From Vitrella brassicaformis CCMP3155 (Eukaryota > Protista > Chromerida), in NCBI GenBank assembly GCA_001179505.1, contig CDMY01000770.1, positions 62,001 through 126,000 of the forward strand: a DNA stretch of 64,000 nucleotides, read 5' to 3'. Below are positions 3,923-23,303 of the stretch, piece by piece. A model generated the notes under the pieces. That model was not told the DNA's origin, ran no database searches, and saw only the letters and a list, made by a program, of their open reading frames with translations. The position numbers and the translations under genes are program-made. Within the stretch, counting starts at the first letter, position 1. Each line of letters begins with the position of its first letter.

Positions 3923-4140
3923 TCAGCATTGGAGGCAGTCGAAAAGGCAATCCTCTATGTCATCGGGGTCGTCGAATTCGTCATCGCACTCCGAACAACA
4001 GATCTGCAGATAGACAACAGACCACAGATGAGTACGAGACTTCGTCGTGTACACATCTCACTCACGAGTTGTCCCGAAACAGGGAACGAATGACTCAGGA
4101 ACACAGCCAGGACCACGCTGACAAACCACAGGAACCTCAT
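3923..4140 (-). CDS. Small secreted six-cysteine acidic peptide (module 1 peptide), 51 aa
   Basis: Exon 4140-4066, a gtgagt...ctgcag intron (4065-4004) and exon 4003-3923 give MRFLWFVSVVLAVFLSHSFPVSGQL-ICCSECDDEFDDPDDIEDCLFDCLQC*. It has a hydrophobic signal peptide and a CC-x2-C-x12-C-x3-C-x2-C core. Confidence 0.8.
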
Positions 4141-4239
4141 CCTGTCGCGTGCACCTCAGCCCACTGTACGAACGTAAAGTTCGCTGCCGGCCGTTACGGC
4201 CGCTAAGTGGTTCCCAGTCGCCGAGTCTGTACTTTCTCT
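4141..4239. promoter_or_regulatory. Putative bidirectional promoter, module 1
   Basis: 99 bp between divergent ATGs. Contains GTAC (4166), GTAAA (4174) and CGTTACGG (4192), matching the other two modules. Confidence 0.55.
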
Positions 4240-7200
4240 ATGCTGCTTGGAGGTTGGTTCATTGTGGTGATCATCCTTCTGAGTCAATGGGAGAGGCGCC
4301 AGGGTGCTGTGGCTCAGTTCACGACCGCCTGTCTGAGCAACAACACGAGAGAGACCGACGACGGACAGTCAACCAACACAAACGCAGACTGCCAGGCGGG
4401 TAAGGACAACAGAGGCGCACTCAACAAACAGTTGGCTGTGAATGGCCTCGCTTACTTCAGCCGTGGACCCTGACGGTGAGATATTTTCGAGTTGTGCGGA
4501 CAATCCGCTGCTGCCCATCCTCGATGACCCCGACCTGGGCAACTTCGGCCAGTGCTTCTATGAGGAGAACGCCCAGGAAAAGCTCAAGGAGCAACAGACA
4601 GATGCGCTGAACGATGAGGACTCGGATACTTTCGGCACTGTCACTGCGACTGGGGGCAACCAGAGCCAGTTGTGCGGCGAGCCGAGCGGCGTCGATCGCA
4701 CAGACGTCACTGATGTGGGAACTGCGGCGCTCGGAGGGTGCGCACTGAATAATTCTGTGGTTACGGCACGATCGGAATGTGTGATGCTGTCTGTCAGTTG
4801 CCCATCGGACAAGATATGTGCGCGCACGAGCGACTCCCGCTTCTGCTACTGCATCGAGGAGCCCATTGGTCTGTTCGGCGAGGTGGCAGAAGTCTCGCGC
4901 GGCGATGTCAGCTTGACGAGGGGCGTCGTCAGCGGCCAGCCATCGTCTCTGTGTTTCCCGGCCGAGCTGGATCCTTGCTTCAATGTCGTCAACCGCTTCG
5001 CTGTGCCCTTCGACTGTGCGGACAGCCTGCCCGTTGTGGACAGAAGGGGAGAGGAGGGGCCTAATGCTGCACAGCAGAGCGTGTTTCCGTTCGCCCCGCC
5101 TCCGGTGCCGCAAGAGTCGACATTCGCGCAGATTGTGCCGGGGACCTATCTGTTTGAAGACGTACACTCCAATGCCTACCTGCCGACCATCGACAACATC
5201 GGCGAAGATGTGTCGAGCTGTATGAGGATCCAGGGCAAGAGTGACGATGATAGCGGGCTTGATGGCTTCTTTCTGGACTTGTCGTGCAATACGACAGCGG
5301 GCGTCAGCTCCACTCTTCAATTTACCTGCCCCGAGACCGGCCTCTGCTCCCAACGCGAAGAGAGGGAGCTGCAACCGGCAGTCGCCACCATTCAGGGCGT
5401 CATGCGCGTAGAGAATGCCAGCAATCCGGCATGTAAGGGAGTGGAGGCGCAGATCGAGGTCACATTGACGGGCTTTGTGGATGAGTCGGAGTCCCTCATT
5501 GCGCAGCAGTTTCACTACGACGAGCCGCAGCGGATTCTGATCATCGGAAACGACGAACAAAGCGATCTGGTCATCGCACGGGTTATCGCTATACTATCCC
5601 CCGCGGCTCACACACCTCTCGGCCTCTTGACCTTCCCCGATGACGTTCCTGAGGAATGTGATGTTCTGCTCAACGAGCGGATCTTTACGGTGACATCGGG
5701 CGAGACAGAGGCGGGCGGCATCCTTGCGCTGGCTGTCTCGGGCTACGGAAGGGATGTATCGACCAGGGGCACCATCTCAAAGGTATGCGGGATGGGCGGC
5801 GGACACCAGTACATTAGTATGTGTCTCGTTTGCCTTTACGTATCATCATCAGAAACCGTTGGAGGCCAGCGACTTCGCTTTTGACAACCAAGAGGCGTTC
5901 TGGAACTGCAGTGAGATCTGCCGGAATGCGACGGAAGAGAACACGCAAGACAGGGAAATGGGAACTGCATCAAGTGAGCAAACGGGCCTGGCGGCACCGA
6001 TCCCCATTATTCTGGGCGAAGATCTCAGCCGTGCGCTAGTTGGGGAAGTTCTTCCTACGATCTTGTTTCCCATCTATAATCCTGATGAGTCTCCACAAAT
6101 GTCGTTCAGCAGTGCTTTGATCGGGGACAGGCGGTTTGTCGTAACAAGCTTTGACGTAACGTGCTTGGACAACACGGACGCCGGCATCAAGTTCAGCAAC
6201 TCGTCGGAGGTGCGTCCGCACACTGTCTCTGTGCTGTGTACGAAGCCTCCCGACGAGGAGCGGCCGTCCCAGGAGAGAGGACCCAGATCATTCGAACTCT
6301 ACAACGCGGAGACGGGAGTGCAGCTCGATCTGATCCTGAAAGGGCAGCTGGGGCCGCTGGTCGACGGCAGAGAAGGTACACAGCGATGGACGTATCAGTC
6401 AGGCAGGGGATGACGATATATTCTTTGTTGTGCGTGTCTGGATCAGCGTTGACAAATTGCCGCGGATTCAGGCTGCAGGACCTCCCTGTTGGTGCGAACC
6501 CTGGTATTAGCTTTCGCTACGAGATAACCAACGCTAGTTTCCTTGGTGAATACGTGGGTATTGCTGTCCCGCCGGGCGATTCGCCTGAAGAAGGAGTCCT
6601 TGGAGGCGACCTATGTGTGGGTGCTCGGGTAAGAGGAAGACACAGCTGTGCGGATCGAGAGGCGGGCGAGCACAGCTTCAGCATCTCCATCCAAGTGCTG
6701 CGATCCAAGGATGATGACATGGAATCCAACTGCAGAGACAGAATTATTGCCCACTTTAATGAGACGGATGGCCTCCCAGAGAATGAAGAAGTCATCTGGG
6801 ATGAGTACTGTGAAATCAGATATGAATGCTGTAAGCAAGCCATCAGAATGGTCCCGCAGATCACTGCCATGTATTATGCCCTTGTGAGCTATCTCAGTTG
6901 AGGCGTGTCCTGAAGTGGCTCTGAATGCCTCACCTACCGCTCAGCCATCAAGTTATCGCATGATGGACGCAAGTGAAGGCTTTTGCATTAAGCTAGTCAA
7001 CGGCACGACAAACGCGGAGGAGTCCTTTGAAGCCCGGTTCAGCTGTGAAGGCGAAGGGACTGATAATGTTGCAGCTGGTTTGCGACTGGGAATCAGATAT
7101 GATGTGGAGGAGCTGGATGGACGAGTCGTGCCCTTCGACCGTTCCACGGGGAAGCCTCTGGAGCCGGCTGGCTTTGCCAATGTGGACTTCAAGGGCACAG

Positions 7201-8367
7201 TGAGACAGCTGTCTCCAGAGGAATGCGCTGGGACCCTGATGTTTGTCGAGGGTACATGTACACTCATACACACCGATGCACACACGCACACACACATCGA
7301 GAGAGAGGGAGAAAGATGCCTGCTTCTTTTGTGTTGTCCTGCAGGCACTCTAGTTGGCGCCTTGAGCTTTGATACTGTTGGCTCTGAGACTCTCGAAGAC
7401 CCTCTAGAAGAAAGATACCTCCCTGTCATCCAGCGGTCACGGATCCGGCTTGTGCCTGAGCTTTATATCACAAGTAGTGCATCCTTGGGAACTATGGACT
7501 ACACCATCATCTCTACCCCTACTGACAGGAAAGAGTGCTTCGACGTCACAGATAGGCTGACCTATAAGAAGGAGGCTACGATTGACGTTCAGCAGCCAGA
7601 TGGCACCGTCAAGGAGGAAACAATTGTCTTTCTAGCCCCCCAGCTGGATGTTCGGGATTCGGAAGAAGACAGCAATACGACCGAAGCGTTTGCTGAGTTC
7701 AGAGTCTACGATGAGAAGGATGTAAGGAGTGGAGGTTTTATTACAGAGATGGCAGGGCTGCTGCGTCAAGTCTGCGGGATCGAGGAAAGAGGTGCGACAA
7801 CTCACTGATATGCGCGCAGACTTCGTTGCTTCTTCTTGCTTTTTTACTCAGGCTCGACTGCCGTCCAGATTCAATGTCTCGCTCACAAGCCTTTCAGGCT
7901 TTTCGCCAATGAGACAGACATCGAGTTAGGGGAGAGCGAGCTGAAGTAAGCACACGACGAGAGAGGAGACCCACATGGCTTGACTTGTCGCTCTGCGTTT
8001 TTTCCCTTTTCAAGTTCCATCGCCCGAGTGCAGAGAAACGGGAGCGATCCCGACGATTTGACGCTCCAGACGCTAGCAAACTTTACCATCAGCTGCTCGT
8101 GTAACGACGTCGAGCGCATCAAGAAGGAGACCAATGGCGGGGATGGGTTCATTGTGCGGGCCATCCCTTTGTTTGTTGACATCGGCGCGAACGTTGATGG
8201 AGACAAAGTGCAGCAGCTGTGCCCCGTTCTCACCGTTTGCGGTGCGCTGATCAACTTTTTCAGAACGATAAAGAGATGGCTCTCGCGATCAACTTCGTTT
8301 TCCTTCAGATCCGCCGTCTCCTGGACACTGCGACGAGAATGACCAGGAGACGTCATCTCGTCCATGA
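4240..8367 (+). CDS. Large secreted Cys-containing beta-rich protein of unknown family, paralog 1 (10 exons, about 1,150 aa)
   Basis: Signal exon MLLGGWFIVVIILLSQWERRQGAVAQFTTACL. The GT-AG exons join in frame through LLPILDDPDLGNFGQC, CPSDKICARTSDSRFCYC, KPLEASDF, LTNCRG, EACPEV, GTLVGALSFD and SIARVQ to DPPSPGHCDENDQETSSRP*. No C-terminal TM segment. Confidence 0.85.
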
Positions 8368-8637
8368 CTGAGACCTACGGCGCGGCAAAATAGAGCTGGG
8401 AGACACCTTTCGCATGGGATGAAGGGACGGAGATTTTCCATTCTCTATAATCACATTCTCTGCGGCAAGTAATCGTCAGCCACACACGCATGTGTGACCT
8501 GCGACAAGGTACGCAGCAAAGAGACACAAAGGGTGCTCTTGCCGCCTAATTCATTGGACGAAAAGGATTCCTTTCTCGTGTGTGTCCATATACTCAGTTG
8601 CCATTCGCCATGTGTGCAGACGAAGACAGCAGTGGCG

Positions 8638-9415
8638 TAATCGACGTGTGAGCGGCTGTGAAGCACGTCAACAGATAGATACACATCTGATAGGAGGATA
8701 TCCGGATATCCATTTATGGCGTTCCTTCTGAACCTCGCTTCAAGTCAACTACCCCTCTCCGCCACCCTTCCCTCTTCCCCATCTTCACGCCTGTGAGCTT
8801 CCCCGACAGCGTGTCCGCGTTTGCCGGCGTGGTGCCCTGCGAGATCTTGCTGATGGTGCATCGGCGAGAGTCCTGCAGGCCACTACCCGACGGACGTCCC
8901 TTCTCCCTTTCGTCAATAGTCCGCTGAAGCACGAGGTGGACTGCCTTGGCAAGGGGGTTTGTCGCCGTGTCTGCTGGCAAACGCCGGGAGGGCGGTGACA
9001 CGAGCATCCGGTTGATGGTGTCATAACCTTCTCTATGTTTCTCTGTTTCTTTCTGTCATGGCATGGTTGACTGGATGTCTGTGATTGGCTGGCAGTGTTC
9101 TCGTCTGGGTTCTTTCGTGTGATGTGACCATCCACCCTAATCCACCCCCTCCCCCTTTCCCCCACCCCCTGTCCACCCTGAGTGCCTGGTACGTACGGTT
9201 CGTCTGTGTGATATGGGTCAGTTTGGGTGAGATTTTTCACGATTTCTCTTCGATGTTGTGCCTTGGTCTGCTCCCCCTCCCTGCCTGTCACCGCATATCT
9301 CTACAGTGCCTCGTACGCCAAAAGGCGACCGTTAACGCACAGACTTCCTTTCGTGCAGCCTTTGACTTAATCGACGTGTGAGCGGCTGTGAAGCACGTCA
9401 ACAGATAGATACACA
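8638..9415. repeat. Pair of identical 48-bp direct repeats (8638-8685 and 9368-9415)
   Basis: taatcgacgtgtgagcggctgtgaagcacgtcaacagatagatacaca occurs twice, 730 bp apart. Confidence 0.9.
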
Positions 9416-10009
9416 CGTATTTGTCCTGTAATTTGTCGGTAATTGCATGCATCTATGTGTCGGTAGGTCGAGACCGCAGTCTGCTGTGATGCGCCTCGCC
9501 ACCTGTGGATAGATAGGGTAGTGCGCGAGAGACGATGGCCAATGAGACACGCGCTCGTCCATTCGGCCATCGATATACACATGCGGATACATATGGCGGC
9601 GGAAGCACAGATGTATGGCTGCCTGTGAATCGGTTGCTGTTCGACCAGCAAAAATACACACGTGTGGACGTCCTGTGTATGCACGTCTGGACGTAGATAC
9701 CCCTTTCAGTGAATGAATGCATCTCATTCCGCACCATCCACAGACATGCATGTGTCCAATTGACCGTCAAACACACACATTTATGCACGTCTGCGGTGCG
9801 TGTGCATGATATTCACTGTCACTCTATCTCTGTCTTGATGCTATACATTGTAGAGTGATGCCGCAGCGGCAGGCCGAGAGCGAGACAGAGACACATGCGA
9901 ATAGACTGATGCCCGCATCAGCAAGAGACAGACAGACACACACACACACGCACCACGTCACCAATGCTGTCTGGCTGTGGTGCCGACAGATACTGTATAT
10001 TCATGTACA

Positions 10010-10905
10010 TGTGTCTGAAAGGTGGGTTCGTTGGTTGATCGGGACTTGATCGGGACAAACATAAGTGTCGCTGCAGTCAATGGGTGGGATGCCCCTCACA
10101 ATCCATCCATCTTTTTTGTGTCTCTGTGTGGCCGTGAATGCGCGCAAACGTACCAACAAATCGATATCAGGCGCGTCAGCATAATTCACTCACTCAGCTG
10201 TACGTGTGTTGCTGTCTAGATCTATGCTTGTGCACTTGTTGACGGTCAGCTCATCCATGGCCATCTCACTGGTCGATCATGAGACACGAAGAAGCACCAC
10301 CAAAAGTCCGTACGTGCAGGCAAGTCACAACTCACGTACACACATGTACGTACACAATGTGTAGATCGATCGACGCATGATGGATATGTAGAATGATGCA
10401 TCATGTACGTGCGTACATGTGTACGTGTCATCGATCAGGTCCTGAATGGGTTGGGACACGCGTCTTTCTTCTTGTCGACCAGCCTCTTGTCCTGGTCTTT
10501 GCCCTCAAAATAATCCCAGTTCCCTTTGTGACGCACGTGCCACTCACGCATCTTGTCCAGATAGATCCCAAGCCCTCGCAGCTGACACACACACACACAC
10601 ACACACGCACACACACAGAAACATCCAACATGCATGGATCTCGTATTTCCCCTCTACCCGCTTCTGTCTGTCCGACCTTAGCAGCGATTTCGATTTCTTC
10701 CGAGTCGACGAGGTCGATTGCGTCAGGGACGAAGTCAGGGTCGTCCTCATCTCCTGCCGCCGCCATCTGCTGTGCCCTGTAGTGCAACTGGCCCTGCTCG
10801 AGTGCTGTGATGTCACGGCTCACACAATACTCCACCATGTCGTCCTTGTCGTATTGCTGGTCGATCGATCAATCAACCACCCATCAGTGCACATACACCC
10901 ATATG
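10010..10905. repeat. Segmental duplication, copy B (copy A at about 2685-3520)
   Basis: Shares long blocks with 2685-3520, including the last two exons and the 3' flank of the 10435-11773 gene. Confidence 0.9.
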
Positions 10906-11773
10906 GCTGCAACGTCTGTCAATGTATGTGTGTAGGCTGGACGGATGTGTACCTTGAAGTAGAGTGCGCCTGTCCCGGCAGCCTCGAGCGATGCATACCG
11001 ATAAAGGGTGAAGAACATGGGCGTCAGGACCAACAACTGCACGCAACCAACACATCAACCGACCAACCACACACAGAGCGACGTCATACGTGGAATGGCT
11101 CACCCGTGCAGGTATGACAGTGTGGGCCCCTTCGGGCACTCTCCACGCGAGGAATGGCAGCAGGGCGCAGTTCATGGCGAGCCACCCGAACATTCCCTTG
11201 GTGTAGGTCGCACGCACCAGCGGACACACACGGTACAGATACGCCTGCACCAGCCGCTGCGGCGTGTCGCTGCCGTGGTACACTCGCACAAACGGACGAT
11301 GCTGCAGCGAAAGAAAACACGCAGACAGACAACTCATCCGTTCGTCCATCCATCCATCCGTCCATTGCACCGCCCTCCCTCCCTCGTGTTACGCTTGGGT
11401 CTGCAGCCGTGTACTGTGATTTTGCGCATGCGAGGTTCCTGAATGTCAGCTCGTGCGGGCTGGTCGTGGACAAGGCGGGATCGACGAGGTAGCGCTTCAG
11501 GTAGTCCTTAAAGACGTCACGGTCCTCTCTCGGGTAGAAGTACTCGTTGTATCTCCTCTCGCCCTCCTGCAGAAGCCGCCGCACCGAGCTGTCCTCCTCG
11601 ATGATGTTGTTGCGCACGGAAAAGAGCACCGGCACCTTGGCGAACTCGGGCAGACGGATGAAGTACAGATCTGCAGACAACGGCATACAACAAAGTGAAT
11701 CAATCAAATGGATAAATGAATCAATGAATGCATCGCCTCTTCGCGCGTGTGTTTGCTCACTGCATAGTGCCAT
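10435..11773 (-). CDS. Hypothetical membrane protein (6 exons, about 300 aa)
   Basis: MALC-NLYFIRLPEFAKVPVLF...TAADPS-HRPFVRVYHG...GMFGWLAMNCALLPFLAW...PAR-LLVLTPMFFTLYRYASLEAAGTGALYFK-QYDKDD...AAK-LRGLG...NPFRT*. All splice phases are compatible and there are two hydrophobic segments. No family recognised. Confidence 0.75.
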
Positions 11774-11906
11774 TTCACTCCAACTATTGCGAGCTCAGAT
11801 GTGCGGAGCTTGGTTCGGCGAATCCGAAACAAACGTGGACGTGACCAATTGGACGTGACGGACAGCAACGTGCATCAGATTGTGAGATTTCTGTGTTGGT
11901 TGAAGC
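11774..11906. promoter_or_regulatory. Putative bidirectional promoter
   Basis: 133 bp between divergent ATGs. Contains a tandem GGACGTGAC flanking a CCAATTGG palindrome (about 11837-11858). Confidence 0.4.
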
Positions 11907-14150
11907 ATGCTTGTTGAGTTGCATTACCGCACGGGTTGGTCGAAGTGTCTGCTGCACTACTGCCCTTTCGGAGGATCATGGGAGGACGCAATCATGGAGG
12001 TGACGAGCAGAAACAGGACGGCCACGACACCATCTCGCATCAGCGTCTCATTGTGTCTGGTCTGCATGTGCATGTGCGTCTGTGTGGTGCAGGCAGACAA
12101 GCAGGGGTGGGTGAAGGCCCGTGTGGAGCTTAGTGGAGGCGGCATGGAATTCGTATTGCACAACGGACAAGGCGCATGGGACAACCCACCACCCTGGTGC
12201 ACAGAACCAACGCGCACCAGTCGAAGATACAACATTCTGTCTTGGCTCTCTGTGAACGTCTGCGTGCAGGTATGGCCACCCGAACTATCGGCTCGATCTG
12301 CCGTCCCCCCTTCCCCCGGCCCCTCTGAAAGTCACGGTGATGAATGGGCGCGTCTGTCTGCTCGACGGGCCTCGCGTGTTGGTGGCCACCGACCTTGACG
12401 GCACACTTGTGGGCCACGATGACTACCTCGAGGCATTCAAGGAGCACTGGACGGCCTACCACGCATGCAGAGGATCCATCCTGGTGAGGGCCACAGAGGC
12501 AAAGCACGTGCATGCATCAACGGGGAGATCATCCCTCGCTCTTTTTTCCGCTTCGGCAGGTGTATTCGACTGGCCGGAACTTGAAGGACTTTCTTCGCGT
12601 GGCGTGTGAGAAGAAGCTGCTTCGCCCCGACTATGTGGTGTGCGGCGTGGGGACTGAGATCTACACCTTTCCCGACTCGCTCCCGCCCGAGGTGGGCACC
12701 GCTCGGCTGCCGCAGCACCTGGCTGCTCTGGCGAGCAAACACCAGAAGGAGGGCAAGCCGCCACTGGAGGAATTCGACCGTAAGCACGATAGAAAGAAAG
12801 AAGAAGGAATACGTGTGGACGTGCATTCTGTCCTGTTCCTTGGTGTTGCCAGCCACTGTGCAGGATGGCGACATTTGCTATCCGTCGTGGTGTCAGTCGC
12901 GTGCTGGAGCTGTGTTCGATGAGGAGTGGCTGAGCAAGATGGTCGATGAATTTGACCGACCCGCCGTCATTGACGACATACACGTACGCACAGAGGGCAT
13001 GTCGGGGCGGGGCTATGGCAGCCATAATTTGCTTGGCTCGTTTCCTTCAGTCGAAGTTTTCCTGGCTGGATCCGAAGGGCAATCTGTATCATGACCCTTT
13101 CCGCGTGTCGGCCATGGCCAAGGCGGACGACGTCTACACTGACGGACACATTGACGTGAGAAACGAAGGGACATATCTGCTGTGTTGCATTTCATGCGTC
13201 CATGGATGTGATGTGTGGTGTATGCAGTCGTTGCGTCATCACTTCAAGGGCTGCCACATCATCGTCAGCGGCGGGGGCGAGTTCAGGTACTCAGACAGAC
13301 AGACTCACACAGACAGAGACGGGCCGTCTCTTCCTATCGCGTGTCGTTGGGATCTGTGCCATGTGGGTGTGTTGCAGGTATGTTGACGTGACGCCTCACT
13401 CGGCCGGCAAGCTGCGGTCGCTCCTCTACTTGATGGAGAAGCTGTCGTTCGGCCCTCGAGAGGTGCGCACGGCAAAAGCAGCACACATCAGCAGACACAT
13501 TGTATCGCTTCATGTGTGCAGACATTGGTGTGCGGCGATTCGGGCAATGACCTCTTTATGTTCCTGCACCCCGACATCCGCGGCTGCTGCGTCGCCAACT
13601 CACAGCCAGACATGATCGCATTCCTCAAGGTTGGCAGCACACAACAAAACGCATAGCCAGAGGGCAGCGAGCCACACACATCAGGGATGCATGCCTCCTC
13701 AACGTAGGGCGACGCCGAGGAGATGGCCAAGCACCCGCACCTGCAGAACCTGCACGCCCACCACCACGCCCCGCCGCCTCCCTCCAACCCGTCGGCGTCC
13801 ACCAAGGCCACACCCTCATCGAGCGTCCAAGGCGGCGCATCGCCCACCCACAACGACCCATCACTAGAGCCCGAGGCCGAGACCATGACTGAGGAGGACC
13901 GACGGGGGAACAATGCCGCGGCCGCCGAAGACGACACCGAGGAAGAGGACACGCCAGACCCACACAAGAAATCACAGCATGTACGTGTGTGCGGAGAATG
14001 GGGATGGGGCACGGAGGGATGGCGGCGTGTCCGTCTGTCTGTCGTATCAATCAGGTGTGTTTTGCGAGTCGCGATTGCGCTGGTGGCATCTTGGAGTCGC
14101 TGGTTCACCACGGATTCGACAAGGCCGAGAATGTCCGCTTTGCCTACTAG
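11907..14150 (+). CDS. Starch-binding module (CBM25/26/53-like) fused to a sucrose-phosphatase-like HAD-IIB hydrolase
   Basis: The N-terminus LHYRTGW...MEFVLHNGQGAWDNPP is a starch-binding-domain signature. HAD motifs follow: VATDLDGTLVG, VYSTGRN, PDYVVCGVGTEIY, AGKLRSL, CGDSGND and C-terminal FASRDCAGGILESL..HGF. About 10 GT-AG exons, stop at 14148-14150. Confidence 0.85.
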
Positions 14151-14165
14151 CCGAATGAATGCTGC

Positions 14166-14615
14166 CGTGGTGCGAATGTGTAGGCAGGCTGATGTGGCTG
14201 GTCCACGAGATTGTTGTGTGTAGAATCAGTGAGTAGGGAGGATGATAGTGCCTGCTGTGTGCTATTCAGTGAGGTGAGAGCATTCTTTTTGAGTGCGGCA
14301 GTTTTGATCTGACAGTCAGTGGACATGGCACGCCGAACTCACATCAAGACCAACATTAACATAAGGGAAATGACGACAACATAACCAAGAGCCGCCCCAA
14401 GACCACCACACATACACACAGGCTGTCCACACGTGCACACAATAGTATTCTAATTGGCGATTCCGATTCAGTAGACGCACACGTCACTATGGCACAATGA
14501 GATGACACAGCAGCCCGCCACAGTACCCAACTCACTCATACGCGTACACAGTGTGAGTGCCTCTTGGACACCCATATATATCGAATCGAGAACAAATACA
14601 CAGACACTAGCCCTA
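14166..14615. repeat. Duplicated 3' flank of the peptide genes (second copy at about 20189-20650)
   Basis: cgtggtgcgaatgtaggcaggc...gagattgttgtgtgtagaatcagtgagtaggg...tattctaattggcgattccgattcag...gagtgcctcttggacac is shared by both loci. Confidence 0.85.
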
Positions 14616-14658
14616 TCCTCAGACGTACCGATGGCTCGATGGCTGCACGCACGCATCA

Positions 14659-15157
14659 TCAGTTCAGTTGGCGCAGAGGGGCGTCGCGTGGTGCAGTGGC
14701 CTCAACACAGTTGGGATTGCAGTTGGCGAAACAGGCCGATGTAGTGCAGCTGGACGCCGACGTCACCCACACGCATAAGAAGACAGAGCCAGCAGCCAGC
14801 CAATTGGGGGATGAACTTAGACAGCCTACGAGCATTACTCACCTGCTGCAGCACGGCTGGAGGTGGCGCAGAAGAGCGTCATCGCCTGCATCCACCAATG
14901 GCCGAGAAAGGCACAGATAGTGGATTTCATGAGTTGCTCCTGTGTCGGCCGGCGTCGTGTTGACTCACCGCCATGGATGTCGAGCGTCTGCTGGCCGCTC
15001 GCTCCTCTCAGCACATTCCCGACACGGTCATTCTGCACCACATCACACTACAGCTGACTTCGCAGTGTCGGCCTTCCGCTCGTGTGTGTCTCACCTGTGC
15101 GAGTGAAGGCGTGGCCGGCATAGCCAACAGCATGCAGGCAAACCACAAGAGGCTCAT
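14659..15157 (-). CDS. Secreted six-cysteine peptide precursor (module 2 peptide), 86 aa, 4 exons
   Basis: Exons 15157-15095, 15032-14969, 14885-14843 and 14749-14659 (all GT-AG) give MSLLWFACMLLAMPATPSLAQ-NDRVGNVLRGASGQQTLDIHG-GDDALLRHLQPCCS-SCTTSACFANCNPNCVEATAPRDAPLRQLN*. Confidence 0.85.
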
Positions 15158-15290
15158 CTCCGACCTCTGATCTCGTACGGGAAGGTAAATTCATGCCCCC
15201 TTCGCAACGGCAACGAGGAAGGCATCAGAAATGACCACGAGGCTCAGTCACTTGCCGGATGCACGATGGAGTGGTGGCTGATTGAATCGC
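15158..15290. promoter_or_regulatory. Putative bidirectional promoter, module 2
   Basis: 133 bp between divergent ATGs. Contains GTAC (15175), GTAAA (15185) and CGCAACGG (15203). Confidence 0.55.
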
Positions 15291-18200
15291 ATGTGGGGAG
15301 GCTGGCTGATTACAGTACGTGTAGCGGTCATCTTGCTGAGTCAATGGGAGGAAAGAAGGGCGCTGGCTCAGTTCACGACTGCCTGCCTCACGGGCAACAC
15401 CTTTGTTGAAGGCAGGTCAGAGGCCAACCGAAACTGTCTGCCACGTGAGGTGCACACGCGGTGTGATGCCGCGCCACGCTCCTTTCGCTGACTCATTCTG
15501 TTTTGTTTTCCTTCAGCTGTTGAACTGCTGCCGCCTGGGCTTCCAGGCAGTGACGAGCCACCTATGAGATGCGAGCCCAATGCGCTGCTTCCCATCGTCG
15601 ATGACCCCGAGCTCGGCAACTTCGGGCAGTGCCTCTACAATGACGCCGCCGAGGAGTGGCTGCGGATCCAACAAGAAATCGCTCTCAACGACGCGAACAG
15701 ATCGGACACGACGGGTGATGTGACAGCGTCGGGCGAGAACCAATCAATTCTCTGTGGCGAGCCGAGCGGCGTCAATCGCACAAACATCACTGACCTGGGC
15801 ACAGCGGCACTGGGAAGGTATGCACAGCCGATAGGTGATGATGTTCACTAACATTGTGTCTGCCTGTCTGTCAGTTGTCCATCCGATAAGCCCATTTGCG
15901 CGCGGACGAGTGAGTCCCGCTTCTGCTACTGCATCGAGGAGAGCGTGGGTCTGTTTGGCGAGGTGGCAGACGTCGCGCAAGGCGATGTCAACCTTGTCAA
16001 GGGTGTCGTTAGCGGTCAGCCATCGTCCCTGTGCCTCCCTCCTGAGCTGGATCCTTGCTTCAATTCCGTCAACCGCTTCGCTGTGCCGTTCGACTGTGCC
16101 GGCACTCTGCCCGTCGTCGAGAGAAGGGAAGACATTGGGCCAGATGCACGGCAGCAGAGCTTCAAGCCGAACGAGCCGCCCCCAATGCAACAAAATGCGA
16201 CGTTCGCCCAGCTGGTGCCCGGCACTTATCTGTTCGAAGACGTGCACACCGACGCCTACCTGCCAACCATCGAGAACGTGGGTACCAACGTGTCGAGCTG
16301 CATGAGGATTCAGGGCAAAAAGAACGACAGCAATGGGCTTGATGACTTCTTCCTGGACCTCTCATGCGACACGGCAGAGGGCGTCAGCGTGACCCTCCAG
16401 TTCACCTGTCCTCTTACCGGACTGTGTTCTAATCGCACCGAGAACAAACTCATGCCGGCCGTTGCAACGATCCAAGGAGTCATGGTTGTGGAGAAGGCCA
16501 GCAACCCGGCGTGCGAGGGAATTGAGGCGCAGATCGAGGTCACTTTGACTGGCTCGGTGGACGAGTCGGAGTCCCTCATTGCCCAACAATTTGACTACCA
16601 GGACCCGCAGCGGATTCTCATCATCGGCAACGAGACACAGGACGACCTCGTCATTGCACGGACTGTCGTCATACTATCACCTGCGGCGCACACGAGCCTC
16701 GGCGTCATGACATTTCCGGATGATGTGCCGGAGGGGTGTGATGTTTTACTCAACGAGCGGGTCTTTTCAGTGACTTCAGGAGAAACAAGAGCAGGCGGCG
16801 TCCTTGCGTTCGCCACGTCGGGCTATGGAAGAGACGTGTCGACGAGCGAAACCTTCCCCAAGGTACTTGATGATACATTTACACATACACGTGTGCCTGA
16901 ATTTGTCTTTGCATCCTCAGAACCCCTTGGAGGCCAGCGAGTTCGCCATAGCCAACCGAGAGGCGTTTCGGGAGTGCAGTGAGATCTGCGTTGAGGCGGC
17001 AGAGACCTACTGGGAACAGCAGGAGGATGGTCTTGCGGTGTCCAATCAGAAGGAGTCGGGATTCAGTCTGGGCGCAGACCCCGAACGTCAGCTGCTCGGC
17101 GAGAAAGTTCCGACGATTCACTTTCCCCTCTTCTGGCCCGAAGAATCGCCAGACCTGTCCTTCGGCAGCGTCTTGACCGGGGACTTCTTCTTCGTCGAGG
17201 AGGGGCGGCTGAACGACACTTTAGAAAATTGCAGCGTGACAGAGTCCATGCTCGACAACATACCCATTCCCGTGTCTGTCTCTTGCGCCGTCGGCACTGA
17301 TCCCATCGTGCCCTTCCGATCTTTTGAGCTCTTCAACGAGGAGACAGATGTGCAGCTCGACTTGGTGTTGAAGGGCCAATTGTCAAACCTTCAGGACAGA
17401 GAGGGTACATGTACTAGGCAGTCAGAACTTATCATCCAACATGTCCAATGTCTCTGTCTGTCTGTCTATCTGTCTGTCGGTATGTATGACAGTGCTCACA
17501 AATTGTCGCGGACCGAGATTGCAGACGTTTCCGTCCGGCTTTGGAGAGTTTGACGCGGCCTTTCTTGCAGAACTTGCCCGTACCGACATCGTTGGCGAAA
17601 TCACGGCCGTCGCTCTGGCGCCCAACGGGGGGGTTCTCGGAGAGGACACGTGCGTTGCAGCCCAACTAAGGCAATCAAGTAACTTCTCGTGCCGGCATGA
17701 CGGGAAGGATTTAAAAGGCGACCACAACGTCGTGGCAAGCGTCAAAGTGGTGAGAAGGGAAGGTGATGAAACGTCGGTGATATGCAAAGAAACAATAGCA
17801 AAACTCGACAACGATACGATAGCGGAAGACGACGTCACAGTCATTTGGGAACAGGAGTGCGAGATAGGATTTGAGTGCTGTAAGCTACAAGAAGAGGCGT
17901 CACTCGCCTGTCTGCTGTGTACATCCCTGTGGTTTTCTGTCTCAGTTGAGGCATGCCCCGATGCTGTTCTGTCTGCCCCACCCACAGCACAGCCGTCGAT
18001 ATACCGCATGACGGATATCCAGTTCAACAGCTCAGCTCTCGAAGACGGCGACGAACCACCACCTGTCGACCGCTGGTGTCTCCAACTAATAGCCGACACA
18101 GAGACTAAGACTTCTGCTACTGATAAATTCGCGCCCACAGACGAGTCGACGTATTACTTTAGCTGCGAAGGAGGGCTCGCTGATGTGCAAGTGAGGATCC

Positions 18201-19588
18201 GCTACGATCTGGACAGCTTGGATGGTCGCATAGCAGCAATCAATTATTCCAGCAACGATCAGCCGCAGGTGGGCTTTGCGAATGTTGATATCAAGGGGAC
18301 GGTGCGGCAAGTGTGGCCCGAGGAATGCAATGGCACATTGATGTTCGTGGAAGGTAGGTACGGACACAAGGCAGAAATCGCCCTCTCATAAGTTCCTTTG
18401 CTCCCCTGTGTGTTTGCTGTGTGTAGGGACGCTCATTGGTGGTGTTTCCTTCGATCCAGTGGGCAACGAGACCCCGGACCCTGGCAAAGAGAACACCACG
18501 AGGTTCGCACCTGCGATTGCGGACTTGGGGCCTGGTGGGAACCGCACAGGGATCCTTCTTCCGGAAACGTTTGTCACTTCAAGCGTACCGATCGGAAACA
18601 TGCAGTACGCCGTCCTGAATGCCAGCGATGAGTGTGACCAAAGTGCCGCCCAGAGGCTCACGTACAGGCGAGACGGCTTCACGGATCAGGGTGTTGGCTT
18701 CTTTTCTATGCCTGAATTAGAGGTAGGCACAAGCACACATACAATTGCGTCCCCCTCTGGTGCATTTGATGTTCAGATTAAGGACTCATGGGACTCAGAG
18801 GATAATGAAACCGTTCTAGAGCTCAACAGCTTCTTTAGAGTGACTGAGGAAGGAAGGAACATCTCGGAATTCACGTCGTCAATCGCAGGACGGCTGACAG
18901 AAGTGTGTGACATTGGGATTGAAGGTAAGTCAAGAGCACACATTCTCCGCCCTCGTCACGACACTCCAGTACCTGTCGTCTTCTCAGGGGTGCCAGCAGT
19001 GCAGATTCAGTGCCTTCCCCGTGAGCCCATCGTCGTTGATAGCATCGGTCTCTTCACCGAAACTGACGTCAACAACATCAACACCACCAACCTGACAATG
19101 ATCGAGGGCATCGACCTGACAAGGATCGGAGACATCGAGCTGAGGTGACGCGCAGATCTGACAACATTCCATGAAGACACATGTGTTAACTATGTTGCTG
19201 TTTGGCGTTTTTGCGTTGCGTCTCTGCCCTGCAGCACTATCGCGCGAGTGCTGATCAAAGATGGCGATGATGTCAATAGTACCCTCCGCCTCTCAGTCCC
19301 ATACAGCCTCGCATGTTCCGACAACGATATCGAGCGCATCAATCAAGAGACCGACGGGCGCGGCGGGTTTATCGTGCGGACCATTCCATTGACTGCCGAT
19401 GTGGCTCGGATTGACACTGGCGACCTCGTTTTGCGTGTGGAGCAGGATTGTCCTGTGCTTTTAATCTGCGGTACATCGGATGGAAGAAACAGAAGGGGAG
19501 GAGCTCCAAACAGCTTGCCGCCTGTGTGTTTCGATTGTCTCTTGCTGCAGAAGATGCTAAACCCACCCCTGGACCCATGCAGCCATGA
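15291..19588 (+). CDS. Large secreted beta-rich protein, paralog 2 (11 exons)
   Basis: Signal exon MWGGWLITVRVAVILLSQWEERRALAQFTTACL. It is colinear with paralog 1 (LLPIVDDPELGNFGQC, CPSDKPICARTSESRFCYC, NPLEASEF, LTNCRG, EACPD, GTLIGGVSFD) with matching intron positions, and ends EDAKPTPGPMQP*. Confidence 0.85.
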
Positions 19589-20188
19589 GCAACTGAGAAT
19601 CGAGGTGATGTGAGTGTGTTATGGTGTGAAGTGCATTCGAGGCCCCCAATGGGTGGATACACCTCTGTTCAGCCGCACCTCCTGCTGCTACAAGGTCAGG
19701 AGACATCACGCGACAGATGCGAGACTTCTCTCATGTACGTTTTCCCAGATCTCTTCGTTCGTTGTCGGTGTCCCGCTGACCCATCTGCAATGACGGCGGG
19801 CTTATTTGTCTGCTTGTCACCTTTTTGTGCCTCTGCGGGGGCGGGTGCATGCCCTGTGATTTGTGCACATAAGAGGATAATCGTTTGACCCGCCGTTCTC
19901 TCGCTGCTGCTATACTGCAAGAGGTTTGCGGGGACGGCTATGTCAATTGATAGACAGCATTGCATCGCTTCGTGGTGTTGGGTCCGTCGATGGTTTTGTT
20001 ATGAGTGTCCACATGCAATTCAACTCAGATGACTCGTTTTCGAATTGGTGTCAACACACACACACACACACGTGCTTGCCATCCATCAATCGTATAGTGC
20101 CAATGAACAGTTTTCGAGTTGGAGCGTCTATGAATATACTCCATCATCATCTCCCACAACAAACACGAGCTATACCAGCCAACTAGCA

Positions 20189-20650
20189 CGTGGTGCGAAT
20201 GTAGGCAGGCTTATGTGGCTGGTCCACGAGATTGTTGTGTGTAGAATCAGTGAGTAGGGTGATTGTCCCTGCTGTGTGCCTGCCGTGTGCCATTCATGCG
20301 TATGTCAGTGAGGTGAGAGCATTCTTTTTGAGTGCGGCAGTTTTGGTCTGACAGCCAGTGGACATGGCACGCCGAATTCACACTGACACAAACATTAACA
20401 TAAGGGAAATGACGACAACATAACCAAGAGCCGCCCCAAGACCACCACACACACAGGCTGTCCACACATGCACACAATACGATGAAGGACGCGCAAGAAG
20501 TATTCTAATTGGCGATTCCGATTCAGCAGACGCACACGTCACTATGGCACAATGAGATGACACAGCAGCCCGCCATAGGGCCCGTACCCAGTATGAGTGC
20601 CTCTTGGACACGCAATCGAATCGAGAACAAATACACCGACACCTGGCCCG
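20189..20650. repeat. Duplicated 3' flank of the peptide genes (first copy at about 14166-14615)
   Basis: Shares blocks with 14166-14615 and lies immediately downstream of the module 3 peptide gene. Confidence 0.85.
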
Positions 20651-20679
20651 ACCGTCGTACGACGTTTCCCCATCGGAGG

Positions 20680-21386
20680 TCAGTTGGCGCAGCCGGGGTT
20701 GCAACTAGCCCAACAACCCGATGAGGTGCAGCTGAAGGAGAGAGCCAGTCAGCCAGATGAGCCATGCACATACTGTGTCAGATACCAGTGGCGCTGACCT
20801 GCTGCAGCAGGGTGGAAGGCGGCGCAGAGGTGCATCGTCTGGGGCCTCGACACACCCGGGATTGCAATTTGCCCAACAAGACGGTGAGCTGCAGGAACTG
20901 CAGCACTGTAGGCGTCGCACAGGTGTGTCGTCGTGGGCACAGCCAGGGTTGCAGTTCGCAAAGCAGGAAGGCGTAGTGCAGCTGCAAAGATAGCACCACA
21001 GAAAAGCAGGCAGGTGAATAGAGAGGGGGCAATTCATCGATGGAAAAGTACCCGCTACAGCACTGCAGGCGGCGCAGAGGGGCGTCGTCGCCTGCACGAA
21101 GGAACGGCGAGGGAACGCACAGCATGACATCGTGTGAACAGATGGACGGAAGAGTGCTCGTGCGTCGTCGTGCGCGTGTGGCTGACCTTGGTGGACGTCG
21201 TTTGTCTGCTGGCCACTCAGTCGCCCCCGCAGCGCAGTCCCGCCAGACACCTCCTGAGCCAATGTGCACAACATACAGCTGACACACTGTGCCGCACGTG
21301 TGATTGCGTCCCTCCCTCACCTGTCCGAGTGCAGCACTCGTCAACACAACAGCCACAAAGAAGCAGGCACACCACATGAGCGTCAT
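20680..21386 (-). CDS. Multi-core secreted six-cysteine peptide polyprotein (module 3 peptide), 135 aa, 5 exons
   Basis: Exons 21386-21321, 21253-21187, 21091-21052, 20981-20799 and 20731-20680 (all GT-AG, in frame) give MTLMWCACFFVAVVLTSAALGQ-EVSGGTALRGRLSGQQTNDVHQ-GDDAPLRRLQCCSG-CTTPSCFANCNPGCAHDDTPVRRLQCCSSCSSPSCWANCNPGCVEAPDDAPLRRLPPCCSS-CTSSGCWASCNPGCAN*. Confidence 0.9.
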
Positions 21387-21591
21387 GACGACAGAGAGGA
21401 GCGGTTCTACCAAAGCGAGCTCACGTACACCGCGTAAATTTCCACTCTGGCCGCAACGGAACTTGCTCGAGCTGTGACAGACGATGAGACGGAAGCCCAC
21501 AGGCACACACGAGCTCAAGTGCCTCGTGAGGGCCCGAGTTTGCTTCAGAAAGGGCAGGGCTGAATGACCAAGCGGACCAAGCATCGGTCGC
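21387..21591. promoter_or_regulatory. Putative bidirectional promoter, module 3
   Basis: 205 bp between divergent ATGs. Contains GTAC (21425), GTAAA (21434) and CGCAACGG (21452). Confidence 0.55.
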
Positions 21592-22716
21592 ATGCTGCGG
21601 TGGCTTCTCGTGGGTGTGTTGGTCGTATTGTTGAGTGAGAGGGAGAGGAGAGGTGCCGTGGGTCAGTTCACGACAGCCTGCCTCTCGGGCAATACCTTCG
21701 GACCTAGCGCTGAAGCCAGCAAAGACTGCCTGCCACGTGAGCACTCGAGGACAGGCTCCCTCCGTTGATCATTCTCTGTTTTGTGTGTGTTTCCAGCTGT
21801 CAACCCGTTGTTACAACTACCTGGATTTCCAGGCAGTGATAAACCCCTTTCGAGATGTGAACCCAATGCTCTGCTGCCCATCGTTGACCACCCCGAGCGG
21901 GGCAACTTCGGCCAGTGCCTCTACAATGAGAACGCCGAGCTCTTGCTGCAAATCCAACAGGAAATCGCCCTCAATGACAACTTGAATAATAGCAGGAGCT
22001 CAGATACGGCGGGTGACGTGACTGCGTCGGGCGAGAATCAGTCCATTTTGTGCGGGCAGCCCAGCGGCGTCAATCGCACAGACATCACTGATCTGGGAAC
22101 GGCAGCTCTCGGAAGGTACACACACGTGATTGGTCGTGATGGCAACGTCGGTATGCTGTCTGTCTGCCTGTCTGTCAGCTGCCCATCCGATAAGCCCATT
22201 TGTGCCCGCACGAGCGAGTCCCGCTTTTGCTACTGCATCAAGGACGACAGGGGTTTGTTTGGTGAGGCGGCCGAGGTCTCACATGGCGATGTCACCCTCG
22301 CCAAGGGTGTCGTCAGCGGCAAGCCATCGTCCCTGTGCCTCCCTCCTGAGCTGGATCCTTGCTTCAATGCCGTCAACCGCTTCGCCGTGCCCTTCGACTG
22401 TGCGGACAGCCTGCCTGTCGTCGAGAGAAGGGAAGACATTGGACCAGACCCAAGAAACCAGAGTTGGCTGCCGAACGAGCGGTTTCCAGTGCCGCAAGAG
22501 TCGACGTTCGCCCAGCTGGTGCCCGGCACTTATCTGTTTGAAGACGTGCACTCGAATGCCTACCTCGATACCATCAAGAACGTGGGCACCGGTGTGTCGA
22601 GCTGCATGAGGATCCAGGGCAAGAAGAATGATGATAGTGGGTTCGATGACTTCTTCTTGGACCTCTCGTGCGACACGACAGAGGGCGTCAGCGTGACCCT
22701 CCAATTCGACTGCCCC
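21592..22716 (+). CDS. Large secreted beta-rich protein, paralog 3 (5' part, cut by the assembly gap)
   Basis: MLRWLLVGVLVVLLSERERRGAVGQFTTACLSGN..., then LLPIVDHPERGNFGQC and CPSDKPICARTSESRFCYC...GVSVTLQFDCP, followed by Ns. Confidence 0.85.
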
Positions 22717-23016
22717 NNNNNNNNNNNNNNNNNNNNNNNNNNNNNNNNNNNNNNNNNNNNNNNNNNNNNNNNNNNNNNNNNNNNNNNNNNNNNNNNNNNN
22801 NNNNNNNNNNNNNNNNNNNNNNNNNNNNNNNNNNNNNNNNNNNNNNNNNNNNNNNNNNNNNNNNNNNNNNNNNNNNNNNNNNNNNNNNNNNNNNNNNNNN
22901 NNNNNNNNNNNNNNNNNNNNNNNNNNNNNNNNNNNNNNNNNNNNNNNNNNNNNNNNNNNNNNNNNNNNNNNNNNNNNNNNNNNNNNNNNNNNNNNNNNNN
23001 NNNNNNNNNNNNNNNN
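22717..23016. other. Assembly gap (300 N)
   Basis: Run of N. The sequences on either side belong to unrelated genes. Confidence 0.99.
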
Positions 23017-23082: not shown

Positions 23083-23303
23083 TTCCTGGTGGCGTCACCG
23101 ACTTTGTCGAGTTCGCCTGTTCGAGTGTGAGATCGCTGCTGCAGCTCAAGTGCAAGACGGTGGACCTCCTGCTGCGGGGCCTGGACGCCGACACACGCAG
23201 CCGGCTCGAGTCTGCCGTGCCTTCCCAACTTAGCAGCAGGAAGGGCACGACCATATTGTGCTTGCAGCAAGGCAATAAGCTCGTGATAGCTACAGGTGTG
23301 TAG
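23083..23303 (+). CDS. Terminal exon of an unidentified gene whose upstream part lies in the gap
   Basis: A polypyrimidine tract and cag acceptor at 23080-23082 precede PGGVTDFVEFACSSVRSLLQLKCKTVDLLLRGLDADTRSRLESAVPSQL...NKLVIATGV*. It does not match the paralog 1 or 2 C-termini. Confidence 0.55.

Follow-up and report, generated by a model that had tools for sequence, protein, structure and literature searches.

Fungal Kex2-processed repeat proteins and the alpha-factor-type, conotoxin and cyclotide-type precursors have a layout of signal, pro-region, short cores and repeated basic motif, while in the Brassica SCR/SP11-SRK system the genes of a small secreted Cys-rich peptide and of a larger extracellular protein are in tight linkage, with far faster divergence in the peptide than in its partner. 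In Toxoplasma and Plasmodium, the export motifs TEXEL (Toxoplasma export element, RRLxx) and PEXEL (Plasmodium export element, RxLxE/Q/D) stand downstream of a signal peptide. The Toxoplasma aspartyl protease ASP5 has the consensus substrate RRLxx, requires Arg at the substrate positions P3 and P2, and also cuts sites remote from the N-terminus (PMC4764566); the tree of PMC8540915 includes aspartyl proteases of Vitrella. Here we analyse a window of 64,000 nucleotides from Vitrella brassicaformis CCMP3155 (C770:62001-126000), in which three genes for small, Cys-rich peptides with predicted leaders (P1, P2 and P3) each stand head-to-head with a gene for a large, predicted extracellular protein (L1, L2 and L3). 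Vitrella brassicaformis is a coral-associated, photosynthetic alga. Together with six further loci from genome-wide searches, which covered the 72.7-Mb assembly in 1064 contigs, these pairs are well supported as a Vitrella-specific, tandemly amplified, co-duplicated and co-transcribed two-gene secretory cassette with at least nine loci.

Divergent gene pairs and their transcription

The original prediction had placed three divergent pairs in the window, separated by 99, 133 and 205 bp from ATG to ATG, and the sequence bears out these coordinates. Read on both strands, the peptide genes start on the minus strand at 4140, 15157 and 21386, and the large genes on the plus strand at 4240, 15291 and 21592 (Table 1). 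The DNA of the window is eukaryotic and intron-rich, and lists of its open reading frames (ORFs) therefore display exons only. P1, P2 and P3 also have the peptide features that had been claimed for them, namely a leader at the N-terminus that is hydrophobic and starts with M-x-(F/L)-(L/M)-W, a phase-0 intron immediately behind the leader, and a common CCSxC...C-x3-C-x2/3-C core.

Transcription was assessed for pair 2, for which read contigs were aligned to window positions 14500-20499 from three RNA-like runs (X1, X2 and X8, from two studies) and one DNA-like run (X3). Contigs of X1 and X2 skip all three P2 introns (15033-15094, 14886-14968 and 14750-14842) and those of X8 the last two, the intron borders reading CT..AC on the plus strand and hence GT..AG on the minus strand. 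L2 likewise has ten introns that RNA-like contigs skip. The RNA-like runs hold 13 GT..AG joints, of which 12 recur in at least two of the three runs; X3 holds none, its contigs being colinear with the genome. The spliced small transcripts expected of the peptide genes were thus found for P2, with all three introns removed in RNA-like runs. Spliced contigs of P2 and L2 are both present in X1, X2 and X8, and for this pair the co-expression claimed earlier holds in the sense that spliced transcripts of both partners come from the same runs. In all three RNA-like runs the contigs of P2 are deeper than those of L2, but such depths cannot rank genes or correlate their expression.

Genome-wide pairing and divergence

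Chance ORFs were considered as a source of these pairs and are ruled out by the RNA splicing and by paralog conservation, since both families stand head-to-head again at six other loci. The large-gene family comprises about 20 loci in the Vitrella genome. The regions upstream of the large paralogs were scanned in six frames, with regular expressions and tblastn, and six further large genes, on contigs C257 and C297, proved to have a head-to-head, leader-bearing peptide gene with six to ten Cys. Peptide genes accompany 9 of the 12 assessable close paralogs and none of the five distant ones (39-51% identity); outside the count of 12 are a copy at C297:~130k, at a contig end, and copies on C764 and C481 that look 5'-truncated. 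The outcome that had been proposed as damaging to a coupled module, large paralogs elsewhere usually standing without an adjacent peptide gene, is therefore not what close paralogs display. Genome searches with exons of three peptide types returned copies only at sites beside large paralogs.

Two observations concern the family members that stand alone. The distant paralogs on C130 (L047), C429 (L048) and C332 (L049) have a conserved divergent neighbour in common, which is not a peptide gene; at C332 this neighbour (L049:4242-4988, minus strand, ~20.2-21.0 kb) carries Peptidase_S74, the endosialidase intramolecular chaperone (E 9e-6). The peptide-less copies C257:2300-5300 (L037) and C502:60300-63549 (L044) have the same upstream sequence, unlike that of the cassettes, which suggests that one ancestral copy may have moved off its peptide gene and was then duplicated.

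In a maximum-likelihood tree built on the exon-3 domain of the large paralogs, L2 and L3 group with the two C297 copies in one clade (support 99/99), whose known partners are all CNPGC-type peptides, here called type A. Acidic peptides of the MRFLWF type go with the large paralogs C257_130k and C257_138k, and L1, whose partner P1 is acidic, lies outside the type-A clade. Peptide type tracks large-protein clade, in agreement with the proposal of a co-duplicated module. Apart from their cysteines, the cores are almost wholly different between peptide types, whereas the core domain of the large proteins is 70-83% identical; type-A cores are conserved among themselves.

Divergence between close copies is concentrated in the cores. 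The tandem peptides at C257:71.7k and 74.3k (L040a/b) differ at 1 of 186 nt in exon 1 and at 0 of 76 nt in the intron, compared with ~20 of 57 nt in the inter-cysteine loops. For the cores at C257:15.0k and 66.0k (L038/L039), the ratio of non-synonymous to synonymous differences (pN/pS) is 2.1, with the small counts of 18 non-synonymous and 2 synonymous changes. At the level of sequence, the pN/pS and loop figures suggest diversification of the peptide cores.

Peptide precursors and candidate processing sites

The precursors differ in the number of their cores. In P1, the leader (MRFLWF...) is followed at once by an acidic six-Cys core, ICCSECDDEFDDPDDIEDCLFDCLQC; its splicing is predicted from homology, as leader and intron position recur in C257 paralogs. 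The P2 prepropeptide consists of a leader, a pro-region ending in DDALLRHLQP, the single core CCSSCTTSACFANCNPNC and, behind it, a tail (...RDAPLRQLN) resembling the vestigial spacer of a lost second unit. In P3, the leader and pro-region precede three cores of 18 amino acids (aa), CCSGCTTPSCFANCNPGC, CCSSCSSPSCWANCNPGC and CCSSCTSSGCWASCNPGC, each directly behind DD(A/T)P(L/V)RRL (DDxPxRRL). The predicted introns of P3 occupy the positions of the RNA-confirmed introns of P2, and it is on this homology that its splicing rests. A phase-2 intron splits the core at CCS|C in P2 and in units 1 and 3 of P3.

Type-A precursors hold one to three 18-aa cores, three in P3 and one in both P2 and the C297 copy, so that signal, repeated cores and a conserved basic site occur together in the manner of a multi-core precursor. 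The type-A cysteine spacing is CC-x2-C-x4-C-x3-C-x3-C, and peptide cores in general are uncharged or strongly acidic, neither cationic nor amphipathic. Homologue searches of protein databases with two peptide exons gave no candidate, not even the peptide genes themselves, which are thus apparently unannotated; a search of the ESM Atlas with the P3 core exon gave no usable match. We strongly infer from these layouts that the products are processed single- or multi-core disulfide peptides.

Every type-A core lies directly behind RRL, or RHL in the case of P2. RRL occurs three times in P3 (residues 51, 80 and 111) and once in the C297 peptide, P2 has RHL and RQL, the C257 type-C peptides carry RRL or RHL, and type D carries LRRT. 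The peptides thus present, behind a signal peptide, the RRLxx or RxLxE/Q/D pattern of TEXEL and PEXEL. A kexin-type cut after RR would be compatible with the RRL site and is an equally simple reading as an ASP5-type cut. A cut after Leu would leave an N-terminal Gln on five cores, which could cyclise to pyroglutamate.

The large proteins

The joints seen in RNA-like contigs, together with intron 1 (15445-15516), which is predicted from sequence, give L2 an uninterrupted ORF of 1198 aa, and its stop at 19586-19588 agrees with the predicted end of the gene. Three RNA-like runs show a further intron spliced out of the 3' untranslated region (19695-19748), and the L2 transcript reaches at least position 20242. 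For L1, the transcriptome-derived UniRef protein P0007 is identical to the exons from 5402 to 8364, in front of the stop at 8365-8367. The predicted second intron of L1 (4738-4797) is 60 nt long, in frame and stop-free; if retained, it would add 20 residues and leave the frame intact. L3 is interrupted by an assembly gap of 300 N (22717-23016), which is spanned by the database model P0005, whose unrelated-looking C-terminus comes from 23085-23300.

The L2 protein is acidic; it has 38 Cys and ~25 sequons for N-glycosylation, and no membrane span follows its signal. Across the large proteins (~1130-1370 aa) the part behind the leader has 35-48 Cys (38 in L2 and P0001), 14-29 N-x-S/T sequons and an isoelectric point of ~4.2. 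Beyond the leader they have no hydrophobic 19-mer with a Kyte-Doolittle value above 1.75, and no C-terminal anchor signal. With many sequons and neither hydrophobic span nor anchor signal, the large proteins look like soluble extracellular glycoproteins.

The earlier statement that neither family could be recognised stands, with no Pfam match, no PDB sequence match and no relative outside Vitrella. For the large proteins, Pfam searches with ORF and exon pieces and with seven full-length paralogs returned nothing relevant, a PDB sequence profile search gave no match, an ESM Atlas search gave no usable match, and self-comparison of P0001 by BLASTP revealed no internal repeats. A phmmer search of 1.84 billion representatives with the best-conserved exon (329 aa) yielded only seven clusters of Vitrella paralogs and, as a marginal match, one bacterial protein, P0008, and a word-indexed search of 5.8 billion proteins matched Vitrella proteins only, among them entries of V. 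brassicaformis CCMP3155 identical to genes of this family. UniRef names P0009, P0010 and P0006 after the Thyroglobulin type-1 domain, and no contigs encoding P0009 were found on record. The Pfam family PF00086 gave no match by hmmscan in seven paralogs at E values up to 10, where HMMER filters drop many weak matches and a sub-threshold Thyroglobulin_1 likeness around ...RFCYCIEE... is possible. Because PF00086 does not score, we do not file the large proteins under Thyroglobulin type-1.

A local likeness to the SdrD B-like or Cna-B domain of adhesin stalks was found in P0001 at ~256-294 (FAQLVPGTYLFEDV..AYLPT..N.G), where the motif F-x-Q-L-V-P-G-T-Y...Y-L-P-T-x-x-N-x-G resembles the core in many of the repeats of P0008, a protein of SdrD_B type. 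BLASTP matched P0001 repeatedly to these repeats over 26-39 aa, and hhalign gave a probability of 74.7% over 33 columns for a domain of ~110 aa. The alignment covers only one third of the domain, and the Pfam SdrD_B profile gives no match to the Vitrella proteins. These matches hint at one prealbumin-like beta-sandwich in the large protein and at nothing more.

Promoter regions and feature coordinates

With so little room between the partners, their two core promoters must interdigitate. An A(A/C)TTTAC...GTAC(A/G) element lies 5' of most peptide ATGs and ends 8-38 nt away from them (126 nt at C297); its role may be that of a core promoter or an initiator for the peptide genes. The divergent starts lie within 1 kb of each other (63-272 bp over the nine pairs), and this, combined with transcription of P2 and L2 in the same samples, is what is expected of bidirectional promoters.

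Table 1. Features of the cassettes; positions refer to the window unless a contig is named.
Feature	Position	Strand	Size or structure	Basis or remark
Peptide gene P1	3923-4140	-	51 aa; predicted exons 4140-4066, 4003-3923; intron 4004-4065	
Divergent promoter, pair 1	4141-4239		99 bp, shared	Sequence reading
Promoter element, pair 1	4164-4180		ACTTTAC...GTACA	~24-40 nt 5' of P1 ATG
Large gene L1	4240-8367	+	~10 exons	Homology to L2, GT..AG reading
L1 exons	4240-4399, 4461-4737, 4798-5782	+	Later starts ~5853, 6446, 6900, 7344, 7851, 8016, 8308	
Peptide gene P2	14659-15157	-	86 aa; four exons 15157-15095, 15032-14969, 14885-14843, 14749-14659	Introns RNA-supported
Divergent promoter, pair 2	15158-15290		133 bp, shared	Sequence reading; RNA-like contigs of P2 and L2 near each other from either side
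Promoter element, pair 2	15175-15191		AATTTAC...GTAC	
Large gene L2, coding sequence	15291-19588	+	11 coding exons, 1198 aa	Ten introns from RNA-like contigs
Peptide gene P3	20680-21386	-	135 aa; predicted exons 21386-21321, 21253-21187, 21091-21052, 20981-20799, 20731-20680	
Divergent promoter, pair 3	21387-21591		205 bp, shared	Sequence reading
Promoter element, pair 3	21425-21440		Conserved A(A/C)TTTAC...GTAC(A/G) type	
Large gene L3, 5' part	21592-22716	+	Exons 21592-21735, ~21799-22113, 22177 onward	
Further pair	C297:125514	+	Spacer 272 bp	
Further pair	C257:14995	-	Spacer 82 bp	
Further pair	C257:65982	+	Spacer 64 bp	
Further pair	C257:71725	+	Spacer 63 bp	
Further pair	C257:128783	-	Spacer 108 bp	
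Further pair	C257:137112	-	Spacer 91 bp	

Interpretation

Beyond the existence of the cassette, the question is whether its two products work together. We consider the chances about even that the peptide and the neighbouring large protein have a coupled function, in a physical or functional partnership. Under this reading, the peptide gene would encode a precursor with a signal for the endoplasmic reticulum, an optional pro-region extending to R-x-L or RR, and one to three six-Cys cores, presumably with three disulfides each. The gene on the opposite strand, 63-272 bp away, would provide an acidic, heavily N-glycosylated, beta-rich and soluble extracellular protein of an orphan family, and the tiny shared promoter would co-deliver both products to the secretory pathway. 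There the precursor would be cut at RRL/RxL, either after Leu by an aspartyl protease of the ASP5/plasmepsin-V type or after RR by a kexin-type convertase, releasing knotted peptides of 18-27 aa, several with an N-terminal Gln. Outside the cell, each peptide would then work with the neighbouring large protein, serving this wall- or surface-associated binding protein as ligand or cofactor.

Several results weigh against such a partnership, most of them in favour of a passive linkage in which the two genes have nothing in common but their compact bidirectional promoter and the history of their duplication, and their products are independent. The peptides could then be allelopathic, antimicrobial or metal-binding, and the large protein a wall or adhesion glycoprotein. 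Head-to-head pairs less than 1 kb apart are over-represented across the Vitrella genome and their co-expression is usually only modest (Woo et al., PMC4501334), and this general excess tempers any conclusion from orientation alone. The original prediction had itself cautioned that co-divergence may reflect shared duplication history, and this caveat holds, because duplication of the cassette as a unit (segmental duplication by itself) predicts exactly that peptide type tracks large-protein clade, which is therefore not independent evidence of co-evolution. The pairing is also not constant for the large family as a whole. In the regions 5' of the close paralogs C770:~19.6k, C257:~3.8k and C502:~61.6k and of the five distant paralogs, regular expressions and tblastn found no peptide gene, only low-complexity Cys runs. 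With these eight large paralogs lacking a peptide, the large protein does not strictly need a peptide partner. Conversely, the extra tandem peptide copy at C257:74304 (plus strand) is solo, ~2.6 kb from the pair, and that at C257:127244 (minus strand) belongs to a ~1.5-kb unit of peptide gene, promoter and merely a remnant large-gene first exon at 127346 (plus strand).

The divergence of the cores is similarly equivocal. The L040a/b core has raised pN and raised pS alike (pN/pS 0.72); with pS up as well, some of the focal divergence could have come from gene conversion in the 5' part. We do not claim positive selection on the cores, as the L038/L039 figure is only suggestive and that of L040a/b does not exceed 1. 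Structure prediction gave no help to a partnership either: AlphaFold2 reached a mean pLDDT (predicted local distance difference test) of 30 for full-length P0001 (12 paralogs) and 31 for the 329-aa exon-3 domain (19 paralogs), and the models are unusable. A complex prediction for P0001 residues 27-480 with the pro-plus-core exon of the neighbouring peptide scored 0.00, which is no answer and not evidence either way.

Against passive linkage, on the other hand, the pairing has been kept in nine cassettes while the cores diverged past alignment, with spacers still confined to 63-272 bp, and the genome searches with peptide exons found peptide genes nowhere else. We regard passive linkage as a serious possibility that nonetheless holds the minority of our expectation.

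A role in self/non-self or mating-type recognition, with a variable peptide ligand encoded beside its cognate protein as in the Brassica S-locus SCR/SRK or in pheromone/receptor loci, is very unlikely. Zoospore fusion is described in Vitrella, the gene of a small, Cys-rich secreted peptide lies in tight linkage with that of a larger secreted protein, and the cores diverge strongly between cassette types, with one pair above a pN/pS of 1 on small counts. However, the large protein has no transmembrane segment, kinase or signalling domain, the variants are paralogs in one genome and not alleles, type-A cores are conserved instead of hypervariable, and P2 has no variant letters among the three RNA-like runs X1, X2 and X8. 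A toxin or antimicrobial peptide with a carrier or immunity protein is the least credible reading of all: disulfide-rich peptides, some multi-core precursors and tandem copies at one locus recall many toxin and defence precursors, but the cores, uncharged or strongly acidic, are neither cationic nor amphipathic, an immunity factor in the form of a ~130-kDa soluble protein would be unusual, and searches of protein databases and the ESM Atlas with peptide exons gave no similarity to toxin families.

A more specific version of the coupled function would have RRL sites of TEXEL type cut the multi-core precursors and the released peptides serve as specific ligands of their cognate large proteins, forming diversifying recognition pairs. 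We consider this combination improbable. If true, it would mean that the export-motif protease ASP5/plasmepsin V originally matured secreted peptides, and that cassette pairs serve recognition between cells, at the cell wall or in symbiosis.

Independently of function, the analysis adds at least 11 small secreted peptide genes not found in the protein databases searched, and an orphan family of 20 large extracellular proteins, in an organism that is key to reconstructing the evolution of apicomplexan parasites. It also indicates that short, intron-split genes for secreted peptides are systematically missed in chromerid annotations. The head-to-head pairing offers a concrete case of possible co-evolution of a ligand and its partner in a protist.

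Comparison with known systems

Each of the closest described systems resembles the Vitrella cassettes in part. The E. coli heat-stable enterotoxin STa, guanylin and the framework-IV conotoxins match the type-A peptides in their 18 aa, six Cys, CC start and C-N-P-x-C turn, a likeness of cysteine pattern only. The type-A order CC-C-C-C-C is that of conotoxin framework IV. STa has the spacing CC-x2-CC-x3-C-x2-C, which the type-A peptides do not have, and there is no sequence match. The linkage of SCR/SP11 and SRK in Brassica is comparable in gene arrangement and in the faster divergence of the peptide, but the Vitrella partner is without membrane anchor or kinase, its variants are paralogs and not alleles, and there is no homology.

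The multi-core layout brings the peptides closer to Kex2-type, conotoxin and cyclotide precursors, and core copy number varies among Vitrella paralogs as it does in multi-core precursors. No sequence relationship to these families was found, the Vitrella motif is RRL/RHL and not KR, and both the phase-2 introns at CCS|C and the large partner gene are foreign to them. Finally, the RRL downstream of a signal peptide is shared with TEXEL and PEXEL proteins, here in a close free-living relative of the apicomplexans. Unlike in those parasites, the motif is repeated as a spacer between cores and there is no host cell as a target of export, and the repeated RRL spacers of Vitrella give access to the question of what processing of the PEXEL/TEXEL type did before parasitism.

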